A DNA stretch of 64,000 bases, taken from Anaeramoeba ignava BMAN. Lineage: Eukaryota; Protista; Anaeramoebae. How positions within the stretch are numbered: position 1 is the first letter of the stretch; each line of letters begins with the position of its first letter. Below the pieces are notes generated by a model, which was given only the letters and a program-made list of their open reading frames with translations, was not told where the DNA came from and ran no database searches. The translations under genes were made by a program, and so were the position numbers. The stretch covers positions 149,491 through 213,490 of the forward strand of contig JAPDFW010000106.1 of the NCBI GenBank assembly GCA_028826165.1. Direction: 5' to 3'. This document shows positions 5,579 to 62,495 of this stretch, in pieces.

Positions 5579-5758
5579 AATTTTTTATTTTTTTTAATGA
5601 GAAAAATGAAAAAAATGAAAAAATGAAAATTAAAAAAAATTTTTTAAATTAATTTTTTCATTTTTTTCTTTTCTTTTGATAGTTTTTTTTTCTAAATCAT
5701 TTATATTTAATTTTCTTCCATTTTTTAATTAATTAATTAATAAATAAATTAATAAATA

Positions 5759-10771: not shown

Positions 10772-13700
10772 TTATTTTTCTAATCTTTCAAGTGTCCAAT
10801 TTCCTTTTTCTTGAATATCTTTATTATTTGGGAAATTATTCATTGCTTTTTTAATTAATTCATTTCCATTTAATTTTTTAATTTCTTCTTGATTTTCTTT
10901 TTATTTTTTTGTTATAAATTTGAAAAAATTAAATTAATAAATTTTAATTTAATTTTCATTTTTTAAATTGATAAAAATATTTTACCATCATTATTAAAAG
11001 AAATATTATTTAAAGCCCAAATTCCATGTTTTTGAATATCTTGATTATTTGGGAAATTATTCATTGATTTAATTATTACTGAAATTCCATCTTTTTTTCC
11101 AATTTCAATTTTATTTTCTTTTTATTTATTTTTGATTTGGATTTTAAATTAATAAATTAATAAATTATTTAATTATTCCAAAAAAGGTTTTTAAATTAAT
11201 AAAAATATTTTACCATTATTATTAAAAGAAATGTTTTTTAAAGCCCAACATCCTTGTTTTTGGATATCTTCATTATTTGGGAAATTATTCATTGATTTAA
11301 TTATTGTTGATATTCCTTCTTTTTTTCCAATTTCAATTCGATTTTCTTTTTATTTATTTTGATTTGGATTTTAAATAAATTATTTAATTATTTAATTATT
11401 TATTCCAAAAAAAAGGTTTTTAAATTGATAAAAATATTTTACCATCATTAAAAGAAATATTTTTTAAAGCCCAACATCCATTTTTTTGAATATCTTGATT
11501 ATTTGGGAAATTATTCATTGATTTAATTATTGTTGAAATTCCATCTTTTTTTCTAATTTCAATTTCATTTTCTTTTTATTTATTTTTGATTTGGATTTTA
11601 AATTAATAAATTAATAAATTATTTAATTATTCCAAAAAAGGTTTTTAAATTGATAAAATTATTTTACCATCATTTACAGAAATATTAATAAAAGCTTGAC
11701 AAGAATAATTTTGAATATCTTGATTATTTGGGAAATTATTCATTGATTTAATTATTGTTGATATTCCTTCTTTTTTTCCAATTTCAATTTGATTTTCTTT
11801 TTATTTATTTTGATTTGGATTTTAAATAAATTATTTAATTATTTAATTATTCCTTCCAAAAAAAAGGTTTTTAAATTAATAAAAATATTTTACCATCATT
11901 ATTAAAAGAAATATTATTTAAAGCCCAAATTCCATATTTTTGAATATCTTCATTATTTGGGAAATTATTCATTGATTTAATTATTGTTGAAATTCCTTCT
12001 TTTTTTCTAATTTCAATTTGATTTTCTTTTTATTTATTTTTGATTTGGATTTTAAATTAATAAATTAATAAATTATTTAATTATTCCAAAAAAAAGTTTT
12101 TAAATTGATAAAAATATTTTACCATCATTATTTGCAGAAATATTAATAAAAGCTTGACAAGAATAATTTTGAATATCTTGATTATTTGGGAAATTATTCA
12201 TTGATTTAATTATTGTTGAAATTCCATCTTTTTTTCCAATTTCAATTCGATTTTCTTTTTATTTATTTTTGATTTGGATTTTAAATTAATAAATTATTTA
12301 ATTATTCCTTCCAAAAAAAAGGTTTTTAAATTAATAAAATAGTTTTTACCATGATCTCCAACAGAAAAATTATGTAAAATAAAACATCCATTTTGTTGAA
12401 TTTTTTCATTTAATTGAAATTCTTTCATCCATTGAATTGTTTTTTCAATATTAATATCTTCTTCAATTTTAATTTCTTTTTTTTAAATTTAATTTTAATT
12501 TTAATTATAATTTTAATTTAGGAAATAAATTACCAGAAATTTTTCCTTCTTTTTGTTCTCGAAAATTTTGTAAATTAATTTGTATTTTTCTTTCTTCTTT
12601 TATTCTAACTTTGTTTTCTCTTTTTTCTAATTCAATTTTATTTTGATTTAAATCATTTTCTTTTTCTTCCAATTTTTGTTGTTTTTGATTCATTTCATTT
12701 TCTTTTTGTAAATTTTCATTTTTCTTTTGATTTAATTTTTGTTTTTTTTGATTTAAATGATTTTCTTTTTCTTGTATTTTTTGTTCTCTTTTTTCTAATT
12801 GAGTTTTATTTTGATTTACTTGATTTTCTTTTTCTTCCAATTTTTGTTGTTTTTGATTCATTTCATTTTCTTTTTGTAAATTTTCATTTTTCTTTTGATT
12901 TAATTTTTGTTGTTTTTGATTTAAATGATTTTCTTTTTCTTGTATTTTTTGTTCTCTTTTTTCTAATTGAGTTTTATTTTGATTTAAATGATTTTCTTTT
13001 TGTGTTAAATTTTTTGCAATTGATTTTAATGTTTCCACTTTTTCATCTAATAAATCAACAAAAAAATTAGATGGAAATAATTGAAATAATTGTGTTTTTT
13101 CAATTTTTTGAATTTCTTCTTTTGTAATTTGTTTCTTTTCTTGAATTTTAATTAAAATTTCATAAATAGTTTTTTTAATTGAATTTGATTTTAAATTTGA
13201 ATTTAAATTTGATTCTTCTTGAAAAGATTGATTAAAATTGAGTTTATTATTTTTCATCCATTCAATAATGATTTCTTGAATTAAATTTGTTTGATCTCTT
13301 CCAAAATTTGAAATTAAAAAATCAATAATATTTAAGAATTCATTTGTTTTTAATTTTGAAATTTCTTTTTTTTGAAGAAGATTATTGTAATTTTTAAGAA
13401 CAAATTTTTGACAAATTTCTAAAAGAAAATTTGAATGAATTTCTTTTGATTTTGAAAATATTTCAAATATATTATTTTGATTAATAATTGGTTCAATTTC
13501 TTTTTCAATTTTAATTTTTAATTTTTCTAATCTAATTATATCAGCAAATTTAAAATATTTTTCGAATTCTTGATGATTAATATTGATTTCACCTTCATAA
13601 ATATATTTGATTATTGGTTCAACAATTTCAAAATCGAATTCTTTAAAATAAATTTGATTTTCTCCTTTTTCTTTTGTAAATAAATCAAAAAATGAACTTC

Positions 13701-14022
13701 TTGTATTTAAAATGATTTTGTGGCATTTTATTGAGTTTTCTTTCTTATTTTCTTTCTTGTTTTCTTTTTCATTTTCTTTCTTATTTTCTTTCTTCTTTTC
13801 TTTCTCATTTTCTTTCTCATTTTCTTTCTTGTTTTGTTTCTTCTTTTCTTTACAATAAATTGTAAAATCTGTAAATTGTTTTTGAGTTTGATAAATTTTT
13901 GAAAAATTAAGTGATTGTTCTTTAAGTAAAATATTATTAATTTCTTTGATTGATAATTTGTATAATTCTTTTAAGTTTTCTGTGTTATTGTTATTATTAT
14001 TATTATTATTATTGTTATTCAT
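10772..14022 (-). CDS. BTB - coiled coil - armadillo repeat protein (gene A); exons 14022-12534, 12475-12350, 12254-12123, 12025-11894, 11796-11668, 11571-11443, 11345-11214, 11117-10986, 10896-10772
   Basis: BTB (TDFTIYC...CHKIILNTRSSFF...IKYIYEG). All introns are GT-AG phase 1 and internal exons are 126-132 nt, each encoding one repeat ENxIEIxKKxGISxIIKSMNNFPNNxDIQxxxxxAxxNIS. TAA at 10772-10774. Confidence 0.88.
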
Positions 14023-39316: not shown

Positions 39317-42300
39317 TTATTTGAAAATAAAATCAAAATCAAAATCAATTTCAATTTTTTCTAAACTTTCTAAAACCCATTTTCCTTTTTCTTGAATATC
39401 TTGATTGAATGGGAAATTATTCATTGCTTTTTTGATAAGTTCAATTCCGTTCAATCTTTTTATTTCTCTTTGGTTTTCTATTTTTTTTTGGGAATTTTAT
39501 ATTTTAAAAGAATTATTTGATTTGAATTAATAATGAATAAATATTTCCAATTTTTGTTTTTGAATATTGATTAATTTTGATTAATGATTGATAAATAAAA
39601 ATTGATTAAATTAGTTTTCTTAATTCATTTTTATTATTATTTGTATAATTTTTATTTTTTAATTTTATCTACCATCATTATTAAAAGAAATATTATTTAA
39701 AGCCCAAATTCCATTTTCTTGAATATCTTGATTATTTGGGAAATTATTCATTGATTTAATAATAGGTTCAATTCCTTTTAAATTATTAATTTCAATTTGA
39801 TTTTCTATTTTATTATTTTTATTTTTGAAAATAAATTTGAAATTGATTAATTTTTTTTTGGATTTTAATTAATAATTAATAATTAAATTATTTATTTATT
39901 ATTTTGTAAATTTATTTAATTTTGATTTATTTTTTTGGAATTATTTTTTGATATTTTTTGATTTAATTTTTAATTTTGAATTTCAAAAAAAAATGGAAAA
40001 TAAATATTATTTTGGATTTTTGGATTAATTTTTTATTTTTATTTACCTTTATTAACAGCAATATTCAATAAAGCTCCACATCCGTTTTCTTGAATATCTT
40101 GATTATTTGGGAAATTATTCATTGATTTAATAATAGGTTCAATTCCTTTTAAATTTCTTATTTCAATTTGATTTTCTATTTTAATATTTTTATTTTTGAA
40201 AATAAATTTGAAATTGATTAATTTTTTTTTTGGATTTTAATTAATAATTAATATTTAATAATTATTTATTTATTATTTTGTAAATTTATTTAATTTTAAT
40301 TTATTTTTTTGGAATTATTTTTTGATATTTTTTGATTTAATTTTTAATTTTGAATTTCAAAAAAAAATGGAAAATAAATAATATTTAGGATTTTTGGATT
40401 TATTATTTATTTATTATTTACCTTCATTATTAGCAGCAATATTCCATAAAGCTCCACACCCATTAATTTGAATATCTTGATTATTTGGGAAATTATTCAT
40501 TGATTTAATAATAGGTTCAATTCCTTTTAAATTTCTAATTTCAATTTGATTTTCTATTTTATTATTTTTATTTTTGAAAATAAATTTGAAATTGATTAAT
40601 TTTTTTTTGGATTTTAATTAATAATTAATAATTATTTATTTATTTATTATTTTGTAAATTTATTTAATTTTAATTTATTTTTTTGGAATTATTTTTTGAT
40701 ATTTTTTGGATTTAATTTTTAATTTTGAAATTCAAAAAAAAATGGAAAATAAATAATATTTAGATTTTTGGATTTATTATTATTTTTTATTTACCTTTAT
40801 TAACAGCAATATTCCATAAAGCTCCACATCCATTAATTTGAATATCTTGATTATTTGGGAAATTATTCATTGATTTAATAATAGGTTCAATTCCTTTTAA
40901 ATTTCTAATTTCAATTTGATTTTCTATTTTATTATTTTTATTTTTGAAAATAAATTTGAAATTGATTAATTTTTTTTTGGATTTTAATTAATAATTAATA
41001 ATTATTTATTTATTTATTATTTTGTAAATTTATTTAATTTTGATTTATTTTTTTGGAATTATTTTTTGGTATTTTTTGATTTAATTTTTAATTTTGAATT
41101 TCAAAAAAAAATGGAAAATAAATAATATTTAGGTTTTTGGATTTATTATTTATTTTTTATTTACCTTTATTAACAGCAATATTCCTTAAAGCTCCACATC
41201 CATTAATTTGAATATCTTGATTATTTGAGAAATTATTCATTGATTTAATAATAGGTTCAATTCCTTTTAAATTTCTAATTTCAATTTGATTTTCTATTTT
41301 ATTATTTTTATTTTTGAAAATAAATTTGAAATTGATTAATTTTTTTTTTGGATTTTAATTAATAATTAATATTTAATAATTATTTATTTATTATTTTGTA
41401 AATTTATTTAATTTTGATTTATTTTTTTGGAATTATTTTTTGATATTTTTTAGATTTAATTTTTAATTTTGAATTTCAAAAAAAAATGGAAAATAAATAA
41501 TATTTAGGATTTTTGGATTTATTATTATTTTTTATTTACCTTTATTATTAAAAGCAATATTCCATAAAGCTCCACATCCATTTTCTTGAATATCTTGATT
41601 ATTTGAGAAATTATTCATTGCTTTAATAATAGGTTCAATTCCTTTTAAATTTCTAATTTCAATTTGATTTTCTATTTTAATATTTTTATTTTTGAAAATA
41701 AATTTGAAATTGATTGATTTTTTTTTTGGATTTTAATTAATAATTAATATTCAATAATTATTTATTTATTATTTTGTAAATTTATTTAATTTTGATTTAT
41801 TTTTTTGGAATTATTTTTTGATATTTTTTAGATTTAATTTTTAATTTTGAATTTCAAAAAAAAATGGAAAATAAATAATATTTAGGATTTTTGGATTTAT
41901 TTTTTATTTTTTATTATTTTTTATTTACCATTATTATGCTTAGCAATATTCCTTAAAGCTCCACATCCATAATATTGAATAACTTGATTATTTGGGAAAT
42001 TATTCATTGCTTTAATAATAGGTTCAATTCCTTTTAAATTTCTAATTTCAATTTGATTTTCTATTTTATTATTTTTATTTTTGAAAATAAATTTGAAATT
42101 GATTAATTTTTTTTTGGATTTTAATTAATAATTAATAATTAATAATTATTTATTTATTATTTTGTAAATTTATTTAATTTTTGGATTTATTTTTTTGGAA
42201 TTATTTTTTGATATTTTTTGATTTAATTTTTAATTTTGAATTTCAAAAAAAAATGGAAAATAAATAATATTTAGGATTTTTGTATTTATTTTTTATTTTT

Positions 42301-45300
42301 TATTTACCTTTATTATTAATAGCAATACTCTCTAAAGCTCCACATCCATTTTCTTGAATATCTTGATTATTTGGGAAATTATTCATTGATTTAATAATAG
42401 GTTCAATTCCTTTTAAATTTCTAATTTCAATTTGATTTTCTATTTTAATATTTTTATTTTTGAAAATAAATTTGAAATTGATTAATTTTTTTTTGGATTT
42501 TAATTAATAATTAATAATTAATAATTATTTATTTATTATTTTGTAAATTTATTTAATTTTTGGATTTATTTTTTTGGAATTATTTTTTGATATTTTTTGA
42601 TTTAATTTTTAATTTTGAATTTCAAAAAAAAATGGAAAATAAATAATATTTAGATTTTTGTATTTATTTTTTATTTTAATTTTTATTTACCTTTATTATT
42701 AATAGCAATATTCCATAAAGCTCCACATCCATTTTCTTGAATATCTTGATTATTTGAGAAATTATTCATTGCTTTAATAATAGGTTCAATTCCTTTTAAA
42801 TTTCTAATTTCAATTTGATTTTCTATTTTAATATTTTTATTTTTGAAAATAAATTTGAAATTGATTAATTTTTTTTTTGGATTTTAATTAATAATTAATA
42901 TTTAATAATTATTTATTTATTATTTTGTAAATTTATTTAATTTTGATTTATTTTTTTGGAATTATTTTTTGATATTTTTTGGATTTAATTTTTAATTTTG
43001 AATTTCAAAAAAAAATGGAAAATAAATAATATTTAGATTTTTGGATTTATTATTATTTTTTATTTACCTTCATTATTAAAAGCAATAACCCCTAAAGCTC
43101 CACATCCATTTTCTTGAATATCTTGATTATTTGGGAAATTATTCATTGCTTTAATAGTAGGTTCAATTCCTTTTAAATTTCTAATTTCAATTCTGCTTTC
43201 TATTTTATTATTTTTATTTTTGAAAATAAATTTGAAATTGATTAATTTTTTTGGAAATAGGAATTTTGCCTATTTTGATCTACTGCCTACTATTGTCTAT
43301 TTTTCATCTTAAATAAAATATCAATTTTTTTCAATATGTTTAACTTTTTATTCAATTTCAAAATCTTCTTTATTTTTTAATTTAAAAACATTTTACTGCA
43401 CAATTTTTAATTTTACTTTTTTTATAAATCCAGAATAATAATAAAAAATAGCCAACTTTTTTTTCAAATATCCACAATAAGTAAAAATGAATAGGTCAAG
43501 AGGAATCTTTTTTGGATTAAATCAAAATTGAGATGTTTTATTTCAAATAAATTATTTATTTTATTTAAAATCAAAATTGATTTTTTTTTGATATCACAAA
43601 TTTTCAATTAAATTTTCCTTTTGTTTTTATGAAAAAATATTTTATCACAGATTAATGATTTTGGTAAAAAGGGTTATTTTTAAATAATTATAATTTTCTT
43701 AAATTTAATGATTTAAATGAAAAATATGAGGTCAATCTCAATTTATCTGAAATTGCCTAAAGTCTGAAATTGCCCAAATTTTTTGATAATCAAAATAACG
43801 ATTTTTTTCAATACATTTGAATGATTATTTAATTAATAAATTTCTTTTATTTAATGATCTTAATTCAAAAATAAAAATAATTTTGAATCTCCAGTTTTCA
43901 ATTTGATTTTTTCAAATTAGATTTTCTTTCACTCTCTGAAAATTATTCAGATTTTAAAAAGGTTTTAAACTTAATTCAAGATTAGATTTATTATCTATGA
44001 ATTCTTTAAATTTATATTTAAAGTTTAGAATTGAGAGAAACTTAACTCAATTTGAATTTGAAGAAAACTGAATTATTTTTTTTTTCTTAATTTTGTGGAA
44101 TTTTAGTGGAATAAACCTATCACTTTTTTTTTAATCATTTATATCTAATTAATGAATAAAAAAAGATCTAAGAGATATTTTTGAATTCATAATCAATTTT
44201 CTTATAAATAAAATATTAAAGGAATAATTTATTTTTTTTTTTTTTGGTTTTTTTCTCGTTTTCCAAAATGCTTTTTTTTTACAATTTCTTGGTTTGAGAC
44301 AATTGCAAATAAATAAAAATATCTCAAATTCCAAAATCAGTTCTCAACTTTTTATTTATTAATAATTGTAAAAAATTAATTTATTTTTTTTTTGATTGGA
44401 AAAAGAAAATTTCATTTTTTTTCTTGTTTCTTTTAAAAAATTTTTTAATTTAATTTTCTAAACTTTTTCAATTTCTCATTTTATTATGAATTCTTATTAT
44501 TTTATAAATTATTTGAATTTCAAATTTTGTTTATAATTTAAATTAAGAATCAAAAATAAAATGAAAATGAAAAATTAATTTAAATGTTTTTAAAATAATT
44601 TTTAATTTAAAATTAATAAATTAAACAAATATTCTTTTTTAAGAGAGTATTTTAATTAAAATTTATAAATATATTATAATTTAAAATTATTTAAAATAAT
44701 GGAAATAAAGTAATCAAATTAATTTAATATTTATTGAAAATGAATATTATTGATAATTTAAATATTAAAATTGAAATCATTAAAACTAAAAATCTAAATA
44801 AATAAACATTAACAATTTATAATTTAAAGAATCAATTTAATTATATTATCAAATATTTATTATCCAGGATAAACAATAAAATTAATATTAATTATTTTTA
44901 TTATAATAAACCAAATATCCATATTTTTGAATTAAATTGAATAAGTATTTTTCATTAAAAATTATATTCAGATAATTTTAAGAAAATTAAATTTTTTTTT
45001 TAAAAAGGAAAATTTAAATAAATAATTTAAAATCAAAAAGTTATTGAATTATTTTTTTTTAAGTTTTTTTTATATAAAATATTTAATTAATTTTGGAAAG
45101 TTTTTTAACTCTTTATTTCCTTTTAAATTATTGTTATTTTATAAATGATTTTATTTCCAAATTCTTTTTATAATTTTAATAAAAATCAAAATGAAAATTG
45201 GAATGAAAATTGCAAATTATTTTTTTTCATTTTTTAATTTAATTTCAATTATAAAACAAAGAATCAAACAAATATTCTTTTATAAATCAATGTTTTAATT

Positions 45301-48300
45301 AATATTTCTAAATATAATATTATTTGAAATTATTGAAAATTCTTCCAAAAAATTAGTTCCTTTTCTTTTTGATTTATTTAAATTAAAATTTATTTATATT
45401 TGGAAATAAAAAAATTAAAATCATTTTCATTAAATCTTAAGTTAATAAATATTCACAAATACAATCATTTCAATCAAAATATAAACCAATTCTTATCTTT
45501 TTAAAATAATTTTTTTTTACATTTTCTTATTTCAAATTATTAAAAAGGAAAAATTTGAAGATAATTTGTTTTATTTATAATCAAATAATAAATAATTAAT
45601 TATATTAAATTTATTTGAAAATCCATTTTTAAATAAATTTATGTAATTCTTATTCTTTATTGATGATTTCATTGATTTATTCCATAAATATAAAGAAAAA
45701 AGGTTCAATTTAAAAATTGTTTTTTTTTCTATCCAACAAATTTAACCACATTTGATTTTGATAATAAATTGATGAATAAAATAAAGAATAGATGAAATTT
45801 CTTATCAAAACTTCTTTAAAACAAAACCCAATAATTTTAATATTGTTTTAGTATATTTTCAACAGAAAAAATTTATCTTCAAAAAATGTTTCATTTTAAT
45901 TCTTTTTCTTTTTCCAATTTGATTTGAATAATTTCCATTTTGTTTTTTGAATTTTTGATTTAAATTCATTAGTATTATATATGATGTTCTTTTTATTTTT
46001 TCAGTTTGTTTTTTTAATTAAGATTTTTGTTTTCTGATCCAATATATTTACAGTTTTCTTTTTCCTTTTTCATCCTGATTATTCTTTACGAATTCATAAT
46101 TTACATTTTAATTCTTGTTTTCTTTTTCAAGCTTTTTTTGGATAATGATATAAGAATTCAATCTTGAAATTATTGAAAATAACATTTAGAATCAATTTTT
46201 TAAATTATTAATTAAATTATTTATTAAATTATTAATTAAATTATTTATTAAATTATTAATTAAATTATTTATTAAATTATTAATTAAATTATTTATTAAT
46301 TTATTAATTAAATTATTTATTAAATTATTTATTAAATTATTAATTAAATTATTAATTAAATTATTAATTAAATTATTTATTAATTTATTAATTAAATTAT
46401 TTATTAAATTATTAATTAAATTATTTATTAAATTATTAATTAAATTATTAATTAAATTATTAATTAAATTATTAATTAAATTATTAATTAAATTATTTAT
46501 TAAATTATTTATTAAATTATTTATTAAATTATTTATTAAATTATTAATTAAATTATTTATTAAATTATTAATTAAATTATTTATTAAATTATTTATTAAA
46601 TTATTTATTAAATTATTTATTAAATTATTAATTAAATTATTTATTAAATTATTTATTAAATTATTTATTAAATTATTAATTAAATTATTAATTAAATTAT
46701 TAATTAAATTATTTATTAAATTATTAATTAAATTATTAATTAAATTATTTATTAAATTATTTATTAAATTATTTATTAAATTATTTATTAAATTATTTAT
46801 TAAATTATTAATTAAATTATTGATTAAATTATTTATTAAATTATTTATTAAATTATTAATTAAATTATTAATTAAATTATTTATTAATTTATTTATTAAT
46901 TTATTTATTAAATTATTTATTAAATTATTTATTAAATTATTTATTAAATTATTTATTAAATTATTAATTAAATTATTAATTAAATTATTAATTAATTTAT
47001 TAATTAAATTATTTATTAAATTATTTATTAAATTATTTATTAAATTATTAATTAAATTATTTATTAAATTATTAATTAAATTATTTATTAAATTATTTAT
47101 TAAATTATTTATTAAATTATTAATTAAATTATTAATTAAATTATTAATTAAATTATTTATTAAATTATTTATTAAATTATTAATTAAATTATTTATTAAA
47201 TTATTAATTAAATTATTTATTAAATTATTAATTAAATTATTTATTAAATTATTTATTAAATTATTTATTAAATTATTTATTAAATTATTTATTAAATTAT
47301 TAATTAAATTATTAATTAAATTATTAATTAAATTATTTATTAAATTATTTATTAAATTATTAATTAAATTATTAATTAAATTATTTATTAAATTATTTAT
47401 TAAATTATTAATTAAATTATTTATTAAATTATTTATTAAATTATTTATTAAATTATTTATTAAATTATTAATTAAATTATTTATTAAATTATTAATTAAA
47501 TTATTTATTAAATTATTTATTAAATTATTTATTAAATTATTTATTAAATTATTTATTAAATTATTAATTAAATTATAATTAAATTATTTATTAAATTATT
47601 TATTAAATTATTAATTAAATTATTAATTAAATTATTAATTAAATTATTAATTAAATTTTATTAAATTATTAATTAAATTATTTATTAAATTATTTATTAA
47701 ATTATTTATTAAATTATTTATTAAATTATTTATTAAATTATTTATTAAATTATTTATTAAATTATTTATTAAATTATTTATTAAATTATTATTAAATTAT
47801 TTATTAAATTATTTATTAAATTATTAATTAATTTATTTATTAAATTATTTATTAAATTATTTATTAAATTATTTATTAAATTATTTATTAAATTATTAAT
47901 TAAATTATTTATTAAATTATTAATTAAATTATTTATTAAATTATTAATTAAATTATTAATTAAATTATTAATTAAATTATTTATTAAATTATTAATTAAA
48001 TTATTAATTAAATTATTTATTAAATTATTTATTAAATTATTTATTAAATTATTAATTAATTTATTTATTAAATTATTTATTAAATTATTTATTAAATAAT
48101 TTATTAAATTATTAATTAAATTATTAATTAAATTATTAATTAAATTATTAATTAAATTATTTATTAAATTATTTATTAAATTATTTATTAAATTATTTAT
48201 TAAAGAAAATGTTTATACAAATTCTAAATAAAACGAAATAAGTAAATCAAAGAATATGCACAAAAAAAAAGCACTGAAAACAAAAGAACACAAATAAAAA

Positions 48301-51300
48301 TGAAAAAATGAAAAAATGAAAAAATGAAAAAATGAAAAAATGAAAAAATGAAAAAATGAAAAAAATGAAAAAATGTTTTTTTTTGTAAAAATTTAGTAAA
48401 TGATTTAACTTGGAATTTAGAAAAGATTTTTTAAATGAATATCTATTCAAAAGATATTTCAATAACTATATAACTTTAATAACAATTTGAAAAAATAAAA
48501 AAATTTGGATTTTCAAATAAAACAATGATTAATGATTTTTTAATTACAAATAATATTATAAATTATAATTAAAAGTATATTTAAGAAAGAATATATTGAT
48601 TAGAATTATTATTTTTATAAGTAATTGAAGATATAAATTTGATAAACTATTTTTAGTTAGCAAAAAAATTGGGAAAAAATTGAGAAAAAATGGATTAGAA
48701 AAAATCAATATTTTGTTTTTTTTTTGTTCTGAATTCAACAAGAAATATTGGAAAATACTTGAATCTCTGATTAAAAATTGATTTATAGTTGTTCTATGTT
48801 AATTAAAACTAAATAATAACAAAATCCAATTTATGTTCTTTTCAATCCACAATTTAACAAAATTTGATTTTAATTAAATTTATTATTAAAGGAAGAAATC
48901 ATTGAAAGGATAATTTAAAACAAAATTATTGATTTATTATTGTTATTTCTTGAATAAAAATTTAATAAAAAATTAATCAATTTGGTTTTGGAATCTCTCA
49001 AATTTAAAATATTTTATTATTCGAATATCATTATTAGAATGATTAAATTATAATTCTAAATAAAGAAAATTCATCAATTCAAAATTTAAAAATGATATTC
49101 AATTATATTCTCAATTATTTATTATTTAAAGTATTCGAATAACTAAGATTTGAAATTTAACGGTTTGAATTTTTCCTTTTTTCGTTAATGATGATAAAAT
49201 TAAAAAAAACAAACAAAACAAATTTTGCAATAAAAATGAACTAAAATATCTCTCAAATCAAACTGAAAAAGCAATTCTAACAATTTCATTTTTCATTTTT
49301 TATTTTTGATTTTATTTTTCATTTTTGATTTTTGATTTAAAAAAATTTTTTTATGAAGAAATTCAAACCTCAAATTACAATTGACGGATATCCCTTTTCC
49401 AAGAATAGACACAACTCTACTAATACAACTGGTTGGTATAGATGTAGAAAAAGGTGTGGAATGACTGCCAAATTGTTCTATGATCCCGATCTCCAATGCA
49501 CTACAAATGGACAGCATAAACCAACTTGCCAAAGGATAAGTCAATCCAGAGAAGTTGCAGATTTGTGGAATTTAGTGGAGGAATTAGCGCTGGATAATAT
49601 TTTCACTCCTGATAGAGTATATAGAGAAATGTGTGTAAGAATTGATTCAGATTTAGAAAAAGCTTATATTACTCCATCTCATCAAGAAGTTAAGAACTAT
49701 GTAAAGAACATCAGATTGCCATCTGGAAAAAAGAAGAAGAAGAAGATTTCCAGAATTTCAAATCACCAAACTCTTTCCAAGACAGATTTTCTCAGAGTGG
49801 AGCAAATGTCACCATTTAATATTTATATATGGGCTAGTAGTTCTATGATTTACAATTTAAGCTTGGCTGAACAAATTTTCATAGATGGGACTTTTAAAGT
49901 GGCTCCAAAAGGATTTAAACAAATGATAGTCGTTATGGCCAAATTACCCAAACTCAATTTGTTTTATCCTGTCTTATATGGTTTAACTGAAACTAAATCA
50001 TACCAAAACTACTTAATTTTCTTTGCTCAGCTTCTCGGTCTAATTCCATATCTTAATCCAGATTATATAACGATTGATTTTGAATTGAATTTGAAAAAGT
50101 CACTGGATCGGATTTTTCCTAACTCAAAAATCATTGGGTGTTATTTTCATTATTGTCAATGTTTAAATAGAAAATTTCAAGAACTAGGATTGAATGAACC
50201 TATACATAAAAAATTAAAAAGAAAGTTACAAAAACTACCATTTGTGCCTCAAGAAAATATCTTAGATAAAGTAAAAAAGCTCAAAAAAAAATTTCCGAAT
50301 CAGGAAAGAGTGTTTAGATATTTCCGTACAACTTTTATGTCTGATCTCAGATCACAGATGTGGAACTATAGTGAACTGCCTAAGGAAATAAAAAGAACCA
50401 ATGGATGTGTCGAGCGTTATAACAGGAGATTAAATGATATTTTCCCCACACCAAGAACAAATTTGGAGTCATTCTCTGCGCATCTAGCACAAGAAGAAAA
50501 GTATTGGCAAACAAGATTGTCTACCACAATATCGAGAGATGGAAATTTTGATTTCAGTTCTGAAAATTCAAATTCAAATTCAAATTCAAATTCAAATTCA
50601 AATTCACTTTTTCTCAATCATCCATATTTAGATCCTGATTTTGAAATTGATGAAGATTTTGAATTTGATGAAGATTTTGAGTTTCTTTCAGATTCAGATT
50701 CAGATTCAGATTCAGATTCAGATTCAGATTCAGATTCAGATTATACGAATTCCCAAATATCCAAACAACAATTTGCAAAAGAAAATGAAAAAGAAAAATG
50801 AAAAAGAAAAAGAAAAAGAAAAAGAAAAAGAAAAAGAAAAAAATGAAAAACAAAATGAAAAACAAAAACAAAAACAAAAACAAAATGAAAAACAAAAACA
50901 AAATGAAAAAGAAAAAGAAAAAGAAAAAGAAAAAGAAAAACCCACAAGAAAAACAAGAAGCAAAACAATATCAAACCAAAAACAAAAACAAAAACAAAAA
51001 CAAAATGAAAATGAAAAAGAAAAAGAAAAAGAAAAAAAGAAAAAGGAAACAGATGTTGGTATTGAGTCTAATATTGATTTTAGTTCCATTTCGAAAACTA
51101 ATTCAATTTTAAAATCAAAAAAAATTCTACAAAGAAAATCAAAAAGAATCCCAAAAAGAAATGATGATTACAATTTAAATATTTTGAATTCAAATTCACA
51201 TTCAGAAAAAGGAAAAAAAAGAAAGCTAAAATTAAAACCAAAATCAAAATCAAAATCAAAATCAAAACCAAAATCAAAATCAAAATTAAAATCAAATTCA

Positions 51301-54300
51301 AAATCAAAATCAAAATCAAGATCAGAATCAGAATCAGATTCAGATTCAGATTCGAATTCAGATTCAAATTCAAATTCAGATTCAAATTCAAATTCAAATT
51401 CAGATTCAGATTCAGATTCAGATTCAGATTTCAAATCAAGATCAAATTCAAATTCTGAAACAGATTCAGATGAGGATTAAAAAGGGAAATCCCTTAGAAC
51501 ACAATCAATTTCTTCAATAATTTTAATGAATTTTCTTGGTTTTTAATCGGTTTTTTTTTGATTGAAATTCAAAATATTCTCGATCAATAATTCTTCATCC
51601 TTTTTTTTTAAAATTCATTTTCCTTTTTTTTTTTCGATTCATGGAATCAATTAATAAAATTCATCTTCAACAATTTTCTTTTTCCACTTTTTTTCTTTAT
51701 TAATTTAAAGGAGGAGAAGAATCAAATATTGGGATCATAACTGTGCAATAATAATAATAATAAATGAAGAAAAAGCTTCTAAGTTCTTTTGTTTTTTTTC
51801 TTCTTATGTTAACTCGAAATCAATTAATTGCATTTTTTTGTTGACTTTTCAATTTCTAGAGAAAATCATAAAGAAATAAGTTCTGCACAAACAGAAAACG
51901 TATTTATCAATTAAAATCGATTCAAAATTGAATTGAATTAAATTGAATTAAATTGAATTAAATTGATTTGAATTGATTTGAATATTTTAGGTAAAAAGTA
52001 AGATGAGATGATTTTCCCATAATTATTTGATTAGAAAAAAAAATGGAAAAGAGAAATAATGATAGATACATTGGAAAAACAGAAAAAAAAAGGATTGATT
52101 ACTCTCACTATTATATAATTTTATCATTTTGAATTGGGATAGATTTTTTTGATAAATTGATTTTTCTGGAATTTCATTTTCATCTTATTTTGATTCTAAT
52201 TGTAAAACGAAATTGGAATTAAAAATAATTTATAAAATAACATTAATTTAAAATAAAATTAAAAATTAAAAAACTTTCTAATTTTAATTAAAGATTTTAT
52301 ATAAAAAGAAATAAGAACAAAAAAGAAAGAAATAAAATTATTTTTAAATAGATTTTCTTTATTGAAAAAAAAATCTGGAATTAAAAATAATTTATAAAAT
52401 AACATTAATTTAAAATAAAATTAAAAATTAAAAAACTTTCTAAATTAATTAAAGATTTTATATAAAAAGAAATAAGATCAAAAAAGAAAAGAAATAAAAT
52501 TATTTTTAAATAGATTTTCTTTATTGAGAAAAAAAATCTGGAATTTAAAATAATTTATAAAATAACATTAATTTAAAATAAAATTAAGAATTAAAAAACT
52601 TTCCAAATTAATTAAAGATTTTATATAAAAAGAAATAAGAACAAAAGAAAGAAATAAAATAAAATTATTTTTAAATAGATTTTCTTTATTGAGAAAAAAA
52701 ATCTGGAATTTAAAATAATTTATAAAATAACATTAATTTAAAATAAAATTAAAAATTAAAAAACTTTCCAAATTAATTAAAGATTTTATATAAAAAGAAA
52801 TAACAAAAAAAAGAAAAGAAATAAAATTATTTTTAAATAGATTTTCTTTATTGAAAAAAAAATTTGGAATTAAAAATAATTTATAAAATAACATAAATTT
52901 AAAATAAAATTAATAATTAAAAAACTTTCTAATTTTAATTAAAGATTTTATATAAAAAGAAATAAGAACAAAAAAGAAAGGAAATAAAATTATTTTTAAT
53001 TAGATTTTCTTTATTGAAAAAAAAAATCCAAAAAAATCAAAAAAAATTCCAATTTTCTTAAAATTACTTGAATTTAATTTTTAATGGAAATTATTTATTC
53101 AATTTAAATCAAAAATTATGATATTTTTATAACTCAAAAAAAAATAATCAAATCCATTTTTTTTCTTTTTTTGGATAATAAATATTTTATATTAAATCAA
53201 ATTCAATTTTAAAATTATAATTAATGAATATTTATTTATTTTTATCTTAATTTTTATTCTTCCAATTCTTATATTCAAATGCTAAATATTATAAATTTTG
53301 AAAAGAAATCAAAAAAAATTAATAAATTTATTTCAACTATTTTTAATAATTTTAATAAATAATTAATTTGTAATTTGATTTCAGATATTAATTAAAATAA
53401 GAATTTTTACTTATTTAGGTATTTTTATATTTATCAGAATGAAAATTGATATTTTGAATAATTTTAAAAAAAGAATTTAAAAAAAATTTGGAATAAAAAA
53501 ATCAAGAAATATTTAAGGATTAATTTAATATATTATTTAAAAAATAAATATTAGAGAGTCATAAGAGATGTTTTAAATATATTTTATTTCTTAATTAAAA
53601 TCAAATTTATCAAAACAAAAGAATGAAATGGTTTCAATTCAATTATAAAATTAATAATAACAAAAGTGAAATTAGATTTTGATTCAGATTAAAATTGATT
53701 TAATTCTTTCTAATTCTCTAATTTGAAATATTAATTTTCAGAATTTTTAAACAATGAATGTAATATTAAACTGAATTCTATAAATTGATAAAATCTTTAT
53801 ATTTCTATCAAAGTAAATGAAAATTAAACTCCAAAAAAAATAAAAATGGAAACTTTAAATTAAAAACCAATTTTATTTTTTGAATTAAATAATTAAATAA
53901 AAAAAATTTATAATTTAAAATTCATTCAATCATAATAAAAATAGTTTTTTTTTGATTAAATTGGAATTTCTTTTAAATTATAAACTTTAAGAAAAATCTT
54001 TATTTTATTATTTTTTTCCGATTTTATTTTTTTAATTTAATTTTTGATTTGTGAAGATAAAAATTAAGATTAAATAAATAAAACATCCTAAAATAAATAA
54101 ATATAAAAAAATATTACAAAAAAACTTTTATGAATATAGAATTAATTATCGAAAATAATAAAAGAATATTTTAATAATTTATGAAATTATTTAATATCAT
54201 TTAATCAAGAAAATAAAACTTATAATTAAAGCTTCAGGAATATAACTCAATTAAAAATCAAATAATAAAAGAATATTTCTGGGAGATATTTATTAAAAAT

Positions 54301-57300
54301 ATTAAAACTTAAGATTTTATTTGAGACAACAAAAAAAAGAAAATATGAGTATTTTGAATTTACTCAATTTATTTTATTTTTGAATATAATAAAAAGTAGA
54401 GAATAAACAACAAAAATGAATTTCCAAAATTACTATTACATGTTTGTAATTAATATTTAAAAAAAGTAAATAAAAAAACTTGATATTTCTTTATTGAAAA
54501 AATGATGTTTTTTAGAGCTGAGTAATCAAAATTTAGAAAAAGAGAATTAAATTAAAAAGAGCAAGACATAAAATTAAGATTTAAATATCTTGAAGAAAAA
54601 ATTGAGAGCTTTTTGGAAATTTAAACTTGATAACTTTTTTGAATTATTGGAATAAAGGAAAAATTCATCTTAAATTTGTGAGATATTATTTGCAAATGAT
54701 CTGAATAGATTGATAAAATAATAAGTGAAAATAGAGTTGGAAAAGAAAAAATGAATTAAATGATAAAAAATAATCAAAAACAAAGATAGATGAAATATCT
54801 AATTTAAGAAAAAATATGAAAAAGAATAACAATTAAAAACAAAGAATTTTTTTTGAGAATGAAAAAGATATATTAAATAAAACAAAATGAGAAAAGTAAT
54901 TAGGAGAAGAAATAAGAAAAAAAGAAATTAAATCAAAAAAAAAGATAGTTAACTTGAAGAAAATGAGGATTTATGAAGCAGAAAAATATTTTAAAGAGAA
55001 TCAAAAAAATGAAAAAATGGGAATGAATATTTCAGTGTAATTATTTCGGGATTCTGAATTAAAAAAAGGAAAATTAAACATAATAATGAGAAGTAATTAT
55101 ATAAATAAAATTGATTTATGTTTGCTTCTAAATTGTTTGTACCAAAAAAAAAATAAAAAAGAGATCATAAATTTTTCATATTTTGAATTGTGATAAGGGA
55201 AATTGATGAAAAGAGAATTATTTTAATCAGAATTAAGCATCAAAAATGTGTTTAAAATGAAAATCAAAAAAATTGTAAAAAAAGTAGATAAAAATAGGCA
55301 GTAGATCAAAATAGGTCAAATTTACCCCTACCATTTTTTTTTGGATTTTAATTAATAATTAATATTTAATAATTATTTATTTATTATTTTGTAAATTTAT
55401 TTAATTTTGATTTATTTTTTTGGAATTATTTTTTGATATTTTTTTGATTTAATTTTTAATTTTGAAATTCAAAAAAAAATGGAAAATAAATAATATTTAG
55501 GATTTTTGGATTTAATTATTATTATTTTTTATTTACCTTCATTATTAAAAGCAATATTCCATAAAGCTCCACACCCATATTTTTGAATATCTTGATTATT
55601 TAGGAAATTATTCATTGATTTAATAATAGGTTTAATTCCTTTTAAATTTCTAATTTCAATTTGATTTTCTATTTTATTATTTTTATTTTTGAAAATAAAT
55701 TTGAAATTGATTAATTTTTTTTTTGGATTTTAATTAATAATTAATAATTAATAATTATTTATTTATTATTTTGTAAATTTATTTAATTTTTGGATTTATT
55801 TTTTTGGAATTATTTTTTGATATTTTTTGATTTAATTTTTAATTTTGAAATTTCAAAAAAAAATGGAAAATAAATAATATTTAGATTTTTGGATTTAATT
55901 ATTATTTTTAATTTTTATTTACCATTATTATCAGCAATATTCGATAAAGCTCCACATCCATTTTCTTGAATATCTTGATTATTTAGGAAATTATTCATTG
56001 ATTTAATAATAGGTTTAATTCCTTTTAAATTTCTAATTTCAATTTGATTTTCTATTTTAATATTTTTATTTTTGAAAATAAATTTGAAATTGATTAATTT
56101 TTTTTTTGGATTTTAATTAATAATTAATATTTAATAATTATTTATTTATTATTTTGTAAATTTATTTAATTTTAATTTATTTTTTTGGAATTATTTTTTG
56201 GTATTTTTTGGATTTAATTTTTAATTTTGAAATTCAAAAAAAAATGGAAAATAAACAATATTTAGATTTTTGGATTTAATTATTATTTTTTATTTACCAT
56301 CATTAATAGAAATACTCTCTAAAGCTCCACATCCATTAATTTGAATATTTTCATAATAATAGTAATTATTCATTGCTTTAATAACACATTTTATTCCATT
56401 TAAATTTCTAAGTTTATTTCGATTATCTTTAATTATTGAATTTTAATATTTATTTTGAATTTTGTTTTCATAATTAGAAATTAAACCAAAAAATAATTTT
56501 AATTTAAATTTTAATTTTGGAAAATAATAAAAAGATATAAAATTTTACATTCATTTTCTCCTGCAAATTTTAGTAAAATAAAACATCCATTTTCTTGAAT
56601 TTTGTAATTATTTGGGCATTGTTTCATATATTTTATTGTTTCTTCAATAGAATCTTTTTTAATTTAAATTTAAATTTGAAAATAATTTTTTAATAATTTC
56701 AAGTTCAAATTTAAAACAATTTACTTTGATTTAAATTTGAAATTTGATTTATAAATTTTTCTAAAGTTTGATTTCCTTTTTCAGAAACATTCATTTCTAA
56801 TTCTTGTTTAATTTCTTTGATCTTATTTTTTTGTTTTTGAATTTTGCTTTCTTTTTTTTGAATAGTTCGCTTAAGTTGTTTTATTTCTTTTTTTTTTTGG
56901 CGATTAGATTCATGAAGTTCATTAATTTCGTTTTTTTTTTTGACTTTAAATTGATGAAGTTGATTTATTTCTTCGTCTTTTTGTTGAATAGTTTGCTTTA
57001 ATTGATTTATTTCTTGATCTTTTTGTTGAATAGATTGATTAAGTTGATTAATTTCTGAATCTTTTTGTTGAATATTTCTTTTAAATTGATTAATTTCTGA
57101 ATCTTTTTGTTGAATATTTCTTTTAAATTGATTTATTTCTTGATCTTTTTGTTGAATATCTCTTTTAAATTGATTAATTTCTTGATCTTTTTGTTGAATA
57201 GATTGATTTAGTTGGTTAATTTCTTGATCTTTTTCTTCAATAGATTCTTCAAGTTTATTGATTTCTTGTTTTTTTTGACGTTTAGATTGATTTAGTTGGT

Positions 57301-59806
57301 TAATTTCTTCATCTTTTTCTTCAATAGATTCTTCAAGTTGATTTATTTCTTGATCTTTTTGTTGAATATTTCTTTTAAATTGATTAATTTCTTGATCTTT
57401 TTGTTGAATAGATTGATTAAGTTGATTAATTTCTGAATCTTTTTGTTGAATATTTCTTTTAAATTGATTAATTTCTTGATCTTTTTGTTGAATATTTCTT
57501 TTAAATTGATTAATTTCTTGATCTTTTTGTTGAATATTTCTTTTAAATTGATTAATTTCTTGATCTTTTTGTTGAATATTTCTTTTAAATTGATTAATTT
57601 CTGAATCTTTTTGTTGAATATTTCTTTTAAATTGATTAATTTCTTGATCTTTTTGTTGAATAGATTGATTAAGTTGATTAATTTCTTGATCTTTTTGTTG
57701 AATATTTCTTTTAAATTGATTAATTTCTGAATCTTTTTGTTGAATATTTCTTTTAAATTGATTTATTTCTTGATCTTTTTGTTGAATAGATTGATTAAGT
57801 TGATTAATTTCTTGATCTTTTTGTTGAATATCTCTTTTAAATTGATTTATTTCTTGATCTTTTTGTTGAATATTTCTTTTAAATTGATTAATTTCTTGAT
57901 CTTTTTGTTGAATAGATTGATTAAGTTGATTAATTTCTTGATCTTTTTGTTGAATATTTCTTTTAAATTGATTTATTTCTTGATCTTTTTGTTGAATAGA
58001 TTGATTAAGTTGATTAATTTCTTGATCTTTTTGTTGAATATTTCTTTTAAATTGATTAATTTCTGAATCTTTTTGTTGAATATCTCGATTAAGTTGATTA
58101 ATTTCTTGATCTTTTTGTTGAATAGTTTGTTTAAATTGATTAATTTCTGAATCTTTTTGTTGAATATCTCGATTAAGTTGATTAATTTCTTGATCTTTTT
58201 GTTGAATATTTCTTTTAAATTGATTAATTTCTGAATCTTTTTGTTGAATATCTCGATTAAGTTGATTAATTTCTTGATTTTTTTGTTGAATAGATTGTTT
58301 AAGTTTTTTGTTTTCTTTATTTAATTCTTGATTTTTTTGATTAATTAATTGAAGTTGATCAGTTGGAGATAAAATTGGATTATTTTGAGTTCTTGAATAA
58401 TTTGAAATAAATCCTTTATTTTTTATATTATCAATAATTAAATAAAAATCTTGAATTTCATTATTAATTTCTTGAATTTGAATTGGATCAATATATTTTT
58501 CTTTATTTATTAAATTTTTATTGCTTTTTTTAAATTTATTTTTCCAATCTTGAGCTAATTTCCAAATTAAATTTATTCTGTTTTCTTTTGGTGTTGATTG
58601 AATAATTTGAATAATTTCTGTTAATTCTTTATTATTAATTTTTCCAGTTTGATTTTCTTCAATAATTTTATTAATATTTTCTTTAATAAACTTTTCACAA
58701 AAATTTGTAAGATAATTTGATTCAATGGAAATACTTTTGAAATAAATTGGAATAACATTCTTTTTATTAATTTGTTCTGAAACTTCTTTTTCAATTTTGA
58801 TTATTAAACTTGTTAATTTAAAATATTTTGAAAGTTGAAAATATTTTTCAAATTTGTTTAAATCAAATTTAAATTCTGAATCATAAAGAAATGAAATGAT
58901 TGGTTTAACAATATCATATTCAAATTGTGGAAGATATAATTCTTCAGTTTCTGGTTCTTCATGATGATTTTCATAAAAAAATCTTGATCTTGAATTAAGT
59001 ATTGATTTATGACAAGGAATTTTTTGATTATTTTTTCCAGCATAAATTGTAAAATCACAATTTTCTTCATTTTGAAACATTATTTTATAATTTGAAAGAA
59101 GTTCACAAATTAAAAATTTATTCATTTCTTGTGGAGGAAATTGATATAATTTTGATATTTGGATTTTTTGTGATTTTTCTTTTGAATAAATTTCTTGAAA
59201 TGTAATTTTTTGGATTTGATTTTCAATTTGATTTTCAATTTGAATTTGAATTTGATTTTGTTGATGATGATATTGATGATGATGACGATGATGATGATGA
59301 TGATGTTTATTTAGATTTTGATTTTGATTTTGATTTTGGTTTTCATTTTGAATTTGATTTTGATTTTTATTTTGATTTTGATTTTGATTTTGATTTTGAT
59401 TTTGATTTTGATTTTGATTTTGATTTTGATTTTGATTTTGATTTTGATTTTGATTTTGATTTTGATTTTGATTTTGATTTTGATTTTGATTTTTGTTTTT
59501 ATTTTGATTTTGATTTTGATTTTGAATTTGATTTTGATTTTGATTTTGATTTTGATTTTGATTTTGATTTTGATTTTGATTTTGATTTTGATTTTGATTT
59601 TGATTTTGATTTTGATTTTGATTTTGATTTTGATTTTTATTTTGATTTTTATTTTGATTTTTGTTTTTATTTTGATTTTGATTTTTGTTTTTATTTTGAT
59701 TTTGAATTTGATTTTGGTTTTTATTTTGATTTTGATTTTGATTTTGATTATTTGATTTTGATTTTGATTTCTTTTTTGAAAATAAAGATGAGAAAAAAGG
59801 TCGCAT
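39317..59806 (-). CDS. BTB - coiled coil - armadillo repeat protein (gene B), 16 exons: 59806-56725, 56653-56549, 56426-56298, 56051-55923, 55668-55537, [MULE in intron], 43199-43068, 42822-42691, 42439-42308, 42060-41929, 41671-41540, 41293-41165, 40923-40795, 40553-40422, 40175-40047, 39804-39673, 39477-~39317
   Basis: Likely ATG at 59806 (MRPFFSS); BTB CDFTIYAG...CHKSILNSRSRFF; 14-aa coiled-coil repeats. All introns are GT-AG phase 1 and the internal exons are stop-free multiples of 3. The stop is at 39317 as sequenced, or at 39351 if one A was lost from an A-run. Confidence 0.85.
46201..48203. repeat. 12-bp minisatellite (TTATTTATTAAA / TTATTAATTAAA), ~2 kb, inside the MULE
   Basis: Direct reading; source of the IKLF/IKLL ORF. 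Confidence 0.92.
49353..51480 (+). CDS. MULE DDE transposase with N-terminal FLYWCH/WRKY-like zinc finger; frameshift in A-run at ~50795 before a low-complexity tail
   Basis: IDGYPF...WYRC...C...H; FIDGTFK (D), TIDFE (D), GCYFHYCQ (CxxH), RTNGCVERYN (E). The EK-repeat tail continues in the 50641-51480 frame. Confidence 0.9.
52215..53025. repeat. ~163-bp tandem repeat, 5 copies, inside the MULE
   Basis: 'ggaatt(a/t)aaaataatttataaaataacat' at ~52215, 52377, 52540, 52706 and 52866. Confidence 0.88.
56960..58290 (-). repeat. Coding 42-bp minisatellite: ~30 copies of 14-aa IQQKD(Q/S)EINQ(FKRN/LNQS)
   Basis: Visible in ORF 56711-59941; double-heptad periodicity. Confidence 0.9.
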
Positions 59807-60995
59807 GGTGTTTCCTTTGATGTGAAATGAGAAAAAAAAAGGAAAAAGAAAAAGTGGACATTTTGTTTTTTTAAAGGAATAAATAAAATAAATATTTATG
59901 AAATAATAATAAATTAATAATAAAAATATTTTATTTTTCATTTTTATTTGTAATTAAATTTAAATTGTAATTTTTTATTGATAATTTTTAAATAAAAAAT
60001 TTTGAATTTATTTTTTCTCTTTTTTGTTTATTTAAATAATATTTAAATAATATTAAATTAATAAGTAATTAATAATTATTTTGTTTCAATTTCATTTATA
60101 TTTTATATTTTTATTATTATTTATTATTAAATTTATTTTTATTTATGTTTTAAAATTAAGAAAAATATTTACTTAATTTTAAATTGTTTTTGAAAAGAAA
60201 AAATGAAAAAAATAAAAAATGGAATAAAGAATATTAAATAATTGAATTTAAAATTAATTCTATTTTATATATTTTATTAATATTTCTTTATTTAAAATAA
60301 TATAAAATTATTCCCAATAATTAAATAAAATTAATAAAAATATTTTTAATTAATTTATTTAAAAATGGAATAAAGAATATTAAATAATTAAATTTAAAAT
60401 TAATTCTATTTTATATATTTTATTAATATTTCTTTATTTAAAATAATATAAAATTATTCCCAATAATTAAATAAAATTGAAAAGAAAATTGAAATTTGTT
60501 AATAAAGATAAAAATTGAATTTTAATAATTTTTATCAATAATTTAAATTGAATTGAATTTATTTTCTATTTAAATAATATTTTCATTGCTTAAATTAATA
60601 TTTTTGAATATTTAGTAATCCAATTTTAATTATAATAAAATATATTGAAAATGAAAATTTAAATTGAAAATTGTTTAAAATATTTTAATAAAGATAAAAA
60701 TTAAATTTTAATAAGATTTAATAATAAATTTTAATTAATTTTTTCTTAAATTATCTAATAATAAATAATTTAAATTTAATTATTATTAATTTCTATTTTC
60801 AATTTTTATTTTTGTTTATTATCTTGAAAAAACAATTTTTCATTTTTTTTATTAAATTTTTAATAATAATTTTAAATTAATTTGAATTGTTTAAAATTTA
60901 GTTTCTTTTCCTATTTATTAATTTAAAGAAGTTAATTTAATTGAAAGTAAAAGAAAATAAAATTGAATTTTGAAAAAGAAATGAAAAAATATTTT

Positions 60996-62393: not shown

Positions 62394-62495
62394 TTTTGAA
62401 ATAAAAAAAATTAAAAAAAAAATGAATTTAAAAAATTTTTTCATTTTTTTCTTTCTTTTTTTAAAATAAAAACAAAAACAAAAACAAAAACAAAA

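Follow-up and report, generated by a model that had tools for sequence, protein, structure and literature searches.

Diversifying selection on predicted groove positions of armadillo-repeat arrays in the anaerobic amoeba Anaeramoeba ignava

Anaeramoeba ignava, an anaerobic amoeba of high A+T content, harbours bacterial symbionts (PMC11550330). We analysed a stretch of 64,000 nucleotides of its contig JAPDFW010000106.1 (positions 149,491 to 213,490; hereafter the window), which contains, on the minus strand from 59809 to 39317, a gene for a BTB-BACK region, a coiled coil and an array of armadillo (ARM) repeats, with one repeat in each phase-1 exon. The locus raises the question of why repeats that are nearly identical, introns included, differ strongly at a few codons of their third helix. 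The original prediction, made from the sequence alone, saw there a ligand-binding surface shaped by diversifying selection and sub-exon recombination. Diversifying selection on the groove positions is well supported by the analysis reported here, and the family very probably serves some form of diversifying recognition.

The 13 ARM exons e3 to e15 (Table 1) are all open, in phase 1 and bordered by AG and GT, with lengths of 129 or 132 nucleotides (nt). The repeat scaffold has a nucleotide identity of 96.5%, and the introns between the ARM exons are 241–257 nt long and 96% identical, except for that between e5 and e6 (12,337 nt). Because all of these introns are in phase 1, repeats can be gained or lost in frame. 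The public gene model of a paralogue, L042, holds exactly the predicted exon translations and therefore supports the splice reading. The exons of the window gene were searched one by one, and a database paralogue, P0001, was used for folding instead of the spliced window protein. The coiled coil of exon 1 has about 30 copies of a 14-residue repeat (56990–58300, minus strand), and the length of this spacer varies widely among paralogues.

The residues that the original prediction had listed at three sites of exons 3 to 15 were recovered exactly, and all 13 exons lie where it had placed them. Counted along the exon, with the split codon as 1, the sites are 30/31, 37/38 and 41. Its assignment of these sites to ARM positions 29/30, 36/37 and 40 was also right, as judged by alignment of helix 3 to Vac8 and plakophilin-1 and by a Pfam Arm match above the cut-off. 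The site list itself stood in part. Family statistics, which rest on 20 of about 50 arrays with 187 internal repeats, give ARM 4, 29, 30, 33, 36 and 40 as the variable positions common to the arrays. Positions 29/30, 36 and 40 were thus correctly named, while 4 and 33 had been missed, and 37 is not a main variable site because its Asn, which is the conserved helix-3 Asn37 of armadillo proteins, is kept in 162 of the 187 repeats. The entropy peaks are at ARM 36 (3.0 bits), 40 (2.65), 30 (2.4), 29 (2.1), 4 (2.0), 26 (1.6), 41 (1.5) and 33 (1.35), and most other positions are below 0.6 bits. The choice of sites is not circular, since the variability of sites in the window gene is predicted by that in the other genes (Spearman 0.63, p=8e-6). 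Positions 4, 30, 33, 36, 40 and 41, which we take to be those randomised in designed-armadillo libraries, coincide with the variable ones of A. ignava. The seven-residue groove signatures number 163 among the 187 repeats; these natural signatures, at positions that engineers vary for modular peptide binders, are directly testable for pocket specificity.

The tandem repeats of about 42 residues are armadillo repeats, as indicated by the Pfam Arm match and by the AlphaFold model of the ARM region of P0001, a regular solenoid with three helices per repeat and a predicted local distance difference test score (pLDDT) of 96. The best Foldseek matches of this model were designed armadillo proteins, mostly fusions or complexes with peptides, and beta-catenin was also found. 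Along helix 3, variability recurs with a 3.46-residue period (p=0.005), and its direction differs by 176 degrees from that of the conserved small/hydrophobic face. Alignment and periodicity support a location of the variable positions on the predicted peptide-binding groove. The peptide site of designed armadillo proteins comprises Glu30 and Trp33, and their concave-side Asn residues bind the peptide backbone (PMC4756613), from which we infer a backbone-binding role for Asn37.

Nonsynonymous (pN) and synonymous (pS) diversities were compared with ARM 4, 29, 30, 33, 36, 37 and 40 as the groove set for pN. The window gene has a pN of 0.295 at groove codons versus 0.035 at other codons, with a scaffold pS of 0.036 and an intron diversity of 0.033. 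The values pooled over the 20 arrays are 0.321, 0.040 and 0.058 for groove pN, other codons and scaffold pS, respectively. That the sites should vary more than the introns had been set beforehand as a condition for selection, and groove pN in the window gene lies well above the intron value. The strongest tree-free sign of selection is the codon pattern at ARM 36. Codons for S, G, E, R, L, K and Q at this position, which lie near TGG, end in G in 47 of 50 gene-codon pairs, while G-ending codons of this type make up only 0.6–12% of usage in neighbouring genes. These residues keep their G-ending codons against the genome bias; therefore, amino-acid changes were gathered without synonymous drift. 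Moreover, positions that are tolerant in distant relatives are nearly fixed in the family outside the groove (0.58 vs 0.09, p=4e-5), so that relaxed constraint alone does not fit. Site models, run with a purpose-written codon-model implementation, preferred M2a over M1a in all six genes, with twice the log-likelihood difference (2dlnL) at 24.8 for the window gene (sites ARM 36 and 40) and 8.7–35.8 for the five others. The family-wide value is 180, and the preference holds both with a tree and with a star phylogeny. The BTB-BACK region has a pN/pS of 0.45–0.75. Tree-free tests and site models thus agree in supporting the predicted diversifying selection on the groove face of helix 3.

Sub-exon reassortment is probable from the distribution of alleles. 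The IN/EN and ES/WN alleles of the window gene, which differ by three nt each and lie about 18 nt apart, occur in four combinations (e3, e8, e12 and e7). Four-gamete cases between alleles differing by several nt involve sites only 6–18 nt apart, and those between ARM 29/30 and 33 are found in four genes. However, a pairwise homoplasy index (PHI)-type test was not significant for the window gene (p=0.68), although it was in four of nine genes, and the excess of incompatibility over clonal simulations of the window gene at gamma 0.5 (p=0.003) was absent under the extreme rate heterogeneity of gamma 0.1 (p=0.14). Such mixed formal tests are expected for very short tracts and are also compatible with recurrent mutation; the predicted recombination therefore has its allele combinations in favour and these two results against it. 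Between different genes, eleven helix-3 blocks match at every nucleotide, but no whole exon does. Neighbouring repeats are barely more similar than distant ones. The original prediction had also read many codon differences as multi-nucleotide swaps. As single events these are unneeded and were rejected, because the codons at nearly every variable site are linked into one network of single-nucleotide steps within the family pool. The multi-nucleotide differences are therefore more plausibly explained as having built up step by step, with conversion then reassorting them.

A further suggestion was that the variable residues might form a code like that of the repeat-variable diresidues of transcription activator-like effectors (TALEs). 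However, the variable positions number about seven, not two, and neighbouring ARM repeats share their pockets (PMC11228518). Trp at 33 and Trp at 36 avoid each other (odds ratio 0.26), and the variable sites are therefore not independent. A TALE-like code with one repeat per ligand unit is unproven on this analysis.

The assembly of A. ignava (42.8 Mb, 147 contigs) contains 563 matches to the helix-3 motif, against none for a reversed-motif control. The listed places form about 50 clusters, so that at least about 50 arrays are present. The closest proteins to the window gene are A. ignava entries, mostly annotated as aardvark. Among ten N-termini scanned, nine have BTB and one has RING-kinase; the array is fused to two BTB-BACK subfamilies and to RING-kinase-SH3. 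The introns of the RING-kinase-SH3 member L042 are 88% identical to those of the window gene, and those of L035 are 83% identical, though its BTB is only 35% identical. The ARM array travels as a module between N-termini. L041 (G000:C102:200500-210499) is a recent duplicate of the window locus, including the upstream BTB-BACK-TLDc gene (96–98% identical). Its array has 5 internal repeats versus 12, and most of the signatures differ; the transposon is absent, and a BTB exon seems to be missing.

Other members were noted in passing. Further close arrays lie on the same contig as the window (C107, 24–61 kb) and on C89. L042 (G000:C110), P0001 and P0152 have ARM cassettes as in the window gene joined to RING-kinase-SH3, and other A. 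ignava proteins have ARM repeats fused to RCC1-BTB. L036 (G000:C61:557000-566999) is a heavily frameshifted array beside a second, more intact one, through decay or long-read error. Related arrays in a picozoan, Salpingoeca, Hondaea and uncultured eukaryotes vary at the same helix-3 positions and are fused to U-box, BTB, kinase and other domains. ARM arrays with 62–85% internal identity are found in P0166, P0054, P0009, P0106, P0139, P0020 and P0153 (from the picozoan, Salpingoeca rosetta, Hondaea and other eukaryotes), and one Salpingoeca array gene that was checked is intron-free. Such arrays across eukaryotes are possibly a widespread undescribed class.

The BTB profile alignment (positions 25–223) matches KBTBD2, and also A55, KLHL11 and SPOP, across BTB and BACK. 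By profile, BTB is followed by 3-box/BACK helices as in cullin-3 adaptors, with weak fold matches, and cullin genes are present in the genome. The most economical reading, to which we give about even odds, is that the family consists of cullin-3-type substrate receptors with a diversifying groove, whose ligands would probably be foreign and changing. Within each gene, repeats and introns are homogenised. Under this reading, whole repeats and stretches of them would be duplicated, lost and reassorted through unequal crossover and short gene conversion. The groove would bind a peptide in extended form, with the conserved Asn37 providing part of the hold, and the BTB-BACK module would recruit cullin-3, so that bound proteins become ubiquitinated. 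The selective driver would most likely be fast-changing foreign proteins from symbionts, ingested or invading bacteria, viruses or selfish elements. A bolder form of this reading, which we think unlikely, is a modular peptide-reading code. Its units would be hundreds of interchangeable one-exon ARM cassettes, each contributing to a side-chain pocket; recombination, and perhaps exon skipping or somatic rearrangement as well, would assemble them into cullin-3 receptors for the destruction of proteins from symbionts or invaders. If true, it would be an anticipatory repertoire for a protist and, for engineers, a selected library of armadillo pockets.

Several observations weigh against the reading as cullin-3-type receptors. 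Position 36 has been described as semi-buried when it is Gly in one designed armadillo protein (PMC4756613). The structure model of the BTB region has low confidence (pLDDT 57). The paralogue sequences L036, L041 and L045 are frameshifted, through decay or assembly error, and the protein collection yielded no entry for the protein of the window gene itself. The tree-based site models also flag a two-state scaffold site, exon position 18, which points to inflation by recombination; therefore, the tree-free tests were given more weight.

The receptors might diversify without ubiquitination, with BTB and the coiled coil forming an oligomerisation or signalling scaffold for self/non-self or symbiont sensing, like fungal allorecognition. 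We regard this as doubtful but still the most serious of the alternatives. The kinase-SH3 N-terminus to which the array is also fused, the DUF4062, kinase, ADP-ribosyltransferase or SH3 domains of related protist ARM arrays and an evolutionary pattern like that of HNWD genes (PMC13449251) would suit a scaffold. However, BACK/3-box helices follow the BTB, and the kinase members also have RING while the relatives often have U-box, so that a ubiquitin-ligase module recurs. It is quite unlikely that the ligands are instead the amoeba's own expanded protein families, such as membrane-trafficking regulators, and that specialisation of the paralogues, not conflict, diversified the groove. Many families are indeed expanded in Anaeramoeba genomes (PMC11550330), but fixed endogenous partners should stabilise the number and order of repeats, whereas the recent duplicate L041 differs in both repeat number and most signatures, and members are being lost.

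Positive selection itself could be dispensed with if the surface positions were merely tolerant, exon-limited conversion imported variants from paralogues and introns were homogenised locally. The 11 identical helix-3 blocks and scaffolds that are 91–97% identical between genes with introns only about 50% alike are in keeping with this, and pS is depressed by A/T codon bias. Nevertheless, other tolerant surface positions are nearly invariant, ARM 36 samples 12 amino acids yet keeps a disfavoured third-position G, and variable sites have about one codon per amino acid. This explanation is largely contradicted, and we consider it very unlikely. Least credible of all, to the point of being negligible, is an assembly artefact or a targeted mutator similar to a diversity-generating retroelement (DGR). 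Some paralogues (L036) may plausibly contain long-read errors, but the in-frame substitutions fall on the same codons in 20 arrays, and the exons recur in a paralogue's public gene model; a plain artefact was rejected. DGR-like mutagenesis was rejected as well, since the many scaffold Asn codons, which would be targets of an adenine-specific mutator, are nearly fixed and the changes involve all bases.

Pfam matches to ARM_ARMC5 and ZER1-like were obtained among the searched sequences. ARMC5, ZER1/ZYG11B, plant U-box-ARM proteins and Dictyostelium aardvark are ARM-containing ligase receptors, in which an ARM substrate-binding region is combined with a ubiquitin-ligase module. Their repeats are divergent, and we know of no hypervariable near-identical arrays among them. 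Designed armadillo repeat proteins (PMC4756613, PMC11228518) and TALE effectors share with the A. ignava array a constant scaffold with variable specificity residues; unlike them, the array is natural, and ARM pockets cover two repeats. Nematode F-box and MATH-BTB adaptors, as summarised in PMC4334554, resemble the family in having a constrained cullin-adaptor domain, a substrate-binding domain under positive selection and birth-death evolution, and degradation of foreign proteins is proposed for them there. The substrate-binding part in A. ignava differs in being a modular, recombining ARM solenoid.

The ROCO-LRR and NB-ARC-TPR receptors of Ectocarpus (PMC3341825) are likewise large birth-and-death families with one repeat per exon, a repeat domain under diversifying selection, repeat numbers that differ between recent duplicates, and recombination within and between genes. 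One repeat per symmetric exon, as in these brown-algal exon-shuffling receptors, is found here. However, A. ignava has ARM instead of LRR or TPR and BTB-BACK or RING-kinase instead of ROC-COR or NB-ARC, and its introns are homogenised together with the exons. Inverted or silent repeat exons in introns, a brown-algal trait, were not found in the window or in any of the loci, where all repeats lie on one strand. Fungal NLRs with high internal conservation (HNWD het-e type; PMC13449251, PMC4986451) also have near-identical repeats with few hypervariable positions under selection, and they likewise evolve in concert, exchange repeats between genes, shuffle their N-terminal domains and are associated with transposons. 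The repeats of the window gene show the identity (at least 70–80%) and the few hypervariable selected sites of such NLR repeats. In A. ignava, however, the repeats are separate exons, and ARM is not among the surveyed types (WD40, ANK, TPR, LRR and HEAT). Pfam scans showed only BTB, RING or kinase and no NACHT or NB-ARC ATPase; with no NTPase domain, the family is not an NLR, and this membership was rejected.

No description of this ARM-array family was found within the limits of the library searched, and the rapidly diversifying recognition system that it suggests would be undescribed. It would extend the strategy of near-identical repeats with few hypervariable sites to armadillo repeats and cullin adaptors. 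Little is known about protist recognition and control of intracellular bacteria; Anaeramoeba serves as a model of symbiosome evolution. The family is a concrete and testable candidate in this respect, combining its many arrays, selection on a known binding groove and a putative ubiquitin-ligase output.

The long intron between e5 and e6 contains a Mutator-like element (MULE), on which the original prediction was silent, identified by its MULE transposase, terminal inverted repeats and target duplication of about 9 bp. The core of its terminal inverted repeat has seven matches genome-wide. The exons are all still open with intact splice sites; therefore, the insertion is recent or tolerated, and the window copy of the gene may be disabled by the element that splits it. 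Tandem repeats within the element are an AT array of 2 kb and a further one of about 160 bp. Ends related to its own occur on contig C51 and, about 11 kb apart, on C132.

Table 1. Features of the ARM-array gene, the inserted element and a second family member, in window coordinates
Feature	Position	Strand	Remarks
Exon 1	56725..59809	-	Low-complexity N-terminus, BTB-BACK (~59209-58355), long coiled coil of 14-residue repeats; Pfam BTB 55 bits; donor site
Exon 2, N-terminal capping ARM-like repeat	56549..56653	-	105 nt, phase 1
Exon 3, first ARM repeat	56298..56426	-	IN/ES/I; divergent
Exon 4, ARM repeat	55923..56051	-	EN/SN/D
Exon 5, ARM repeat	55537..55668	-	KY/WN/F
Mutator-like element, ~12.08 kb, in e5-e6 intron	43253..55332		Short terminal inverted repeats, A+poly-T target duplication 8-9 bp, internal AT tandem arrays
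MULE transposase open reading frame, 482 amino acids	49353..50801	+	Pfam MULE 38 bits
Exon 6, ARM repeat	43068..43199	-	EN/GV/F
Exon 7, ARM repeat	42691..42822	-	EN/WN/I
Exon 8, ARM repeat	42308..42439	-	EN/ES/I
Exon 9, ARM repeat	41929..42060	-	YY/RN/K
Exon 10, ARM repeat	41540..41671	-	EN/WN/F; Pfam Arm 25.6 bits, above cut-off
Exon 11, ARM repeat	41165..41293	-	IN/RN/V
Exon 12, ARM repeat	40795..40923	-	IN/WN/V
Exon 13, ARM repeat	40422..40553	-	IN/WN/A
Exon 14, ARM repeat	40047..40175	-	EN/LN/V
Exon 15, ARM repeat	39673..39804	-	EN/NN/F; W at ARM33
Last exon, C-terminal capping repeat and stop codon	39317..39477	-	
Second family member	10800..14022	-	BTB + coiled coil, six internal one-exon ARM repeats, 97-nt introns, cap; lower end approximate

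Neighbouring genes in the window encode RCC1-BTB and BTB-BACK-TLDc proteins (8898–10427, plus strand, and 60996–62525, minus strand), and BTB adaptors seem to be broadly expanded in the A. ignava genome. Judged by its sequence alone, an open reading frame of 1321 amino acids (25424–29389, minus strand) resembles a Ctf18-type clamp-loader subunit, whose ATPase motif is seemingly interrupted by an intein-like insertion of about 340 amino acids that starts with Cys and ends with His-Asn. A 2-kb stretch of higher G+C content (35%) lies at 3518–7269, in a region with an uninterrupted glycogen-branching-enzyme-like open reading frame and a membrane protein open reading frame.

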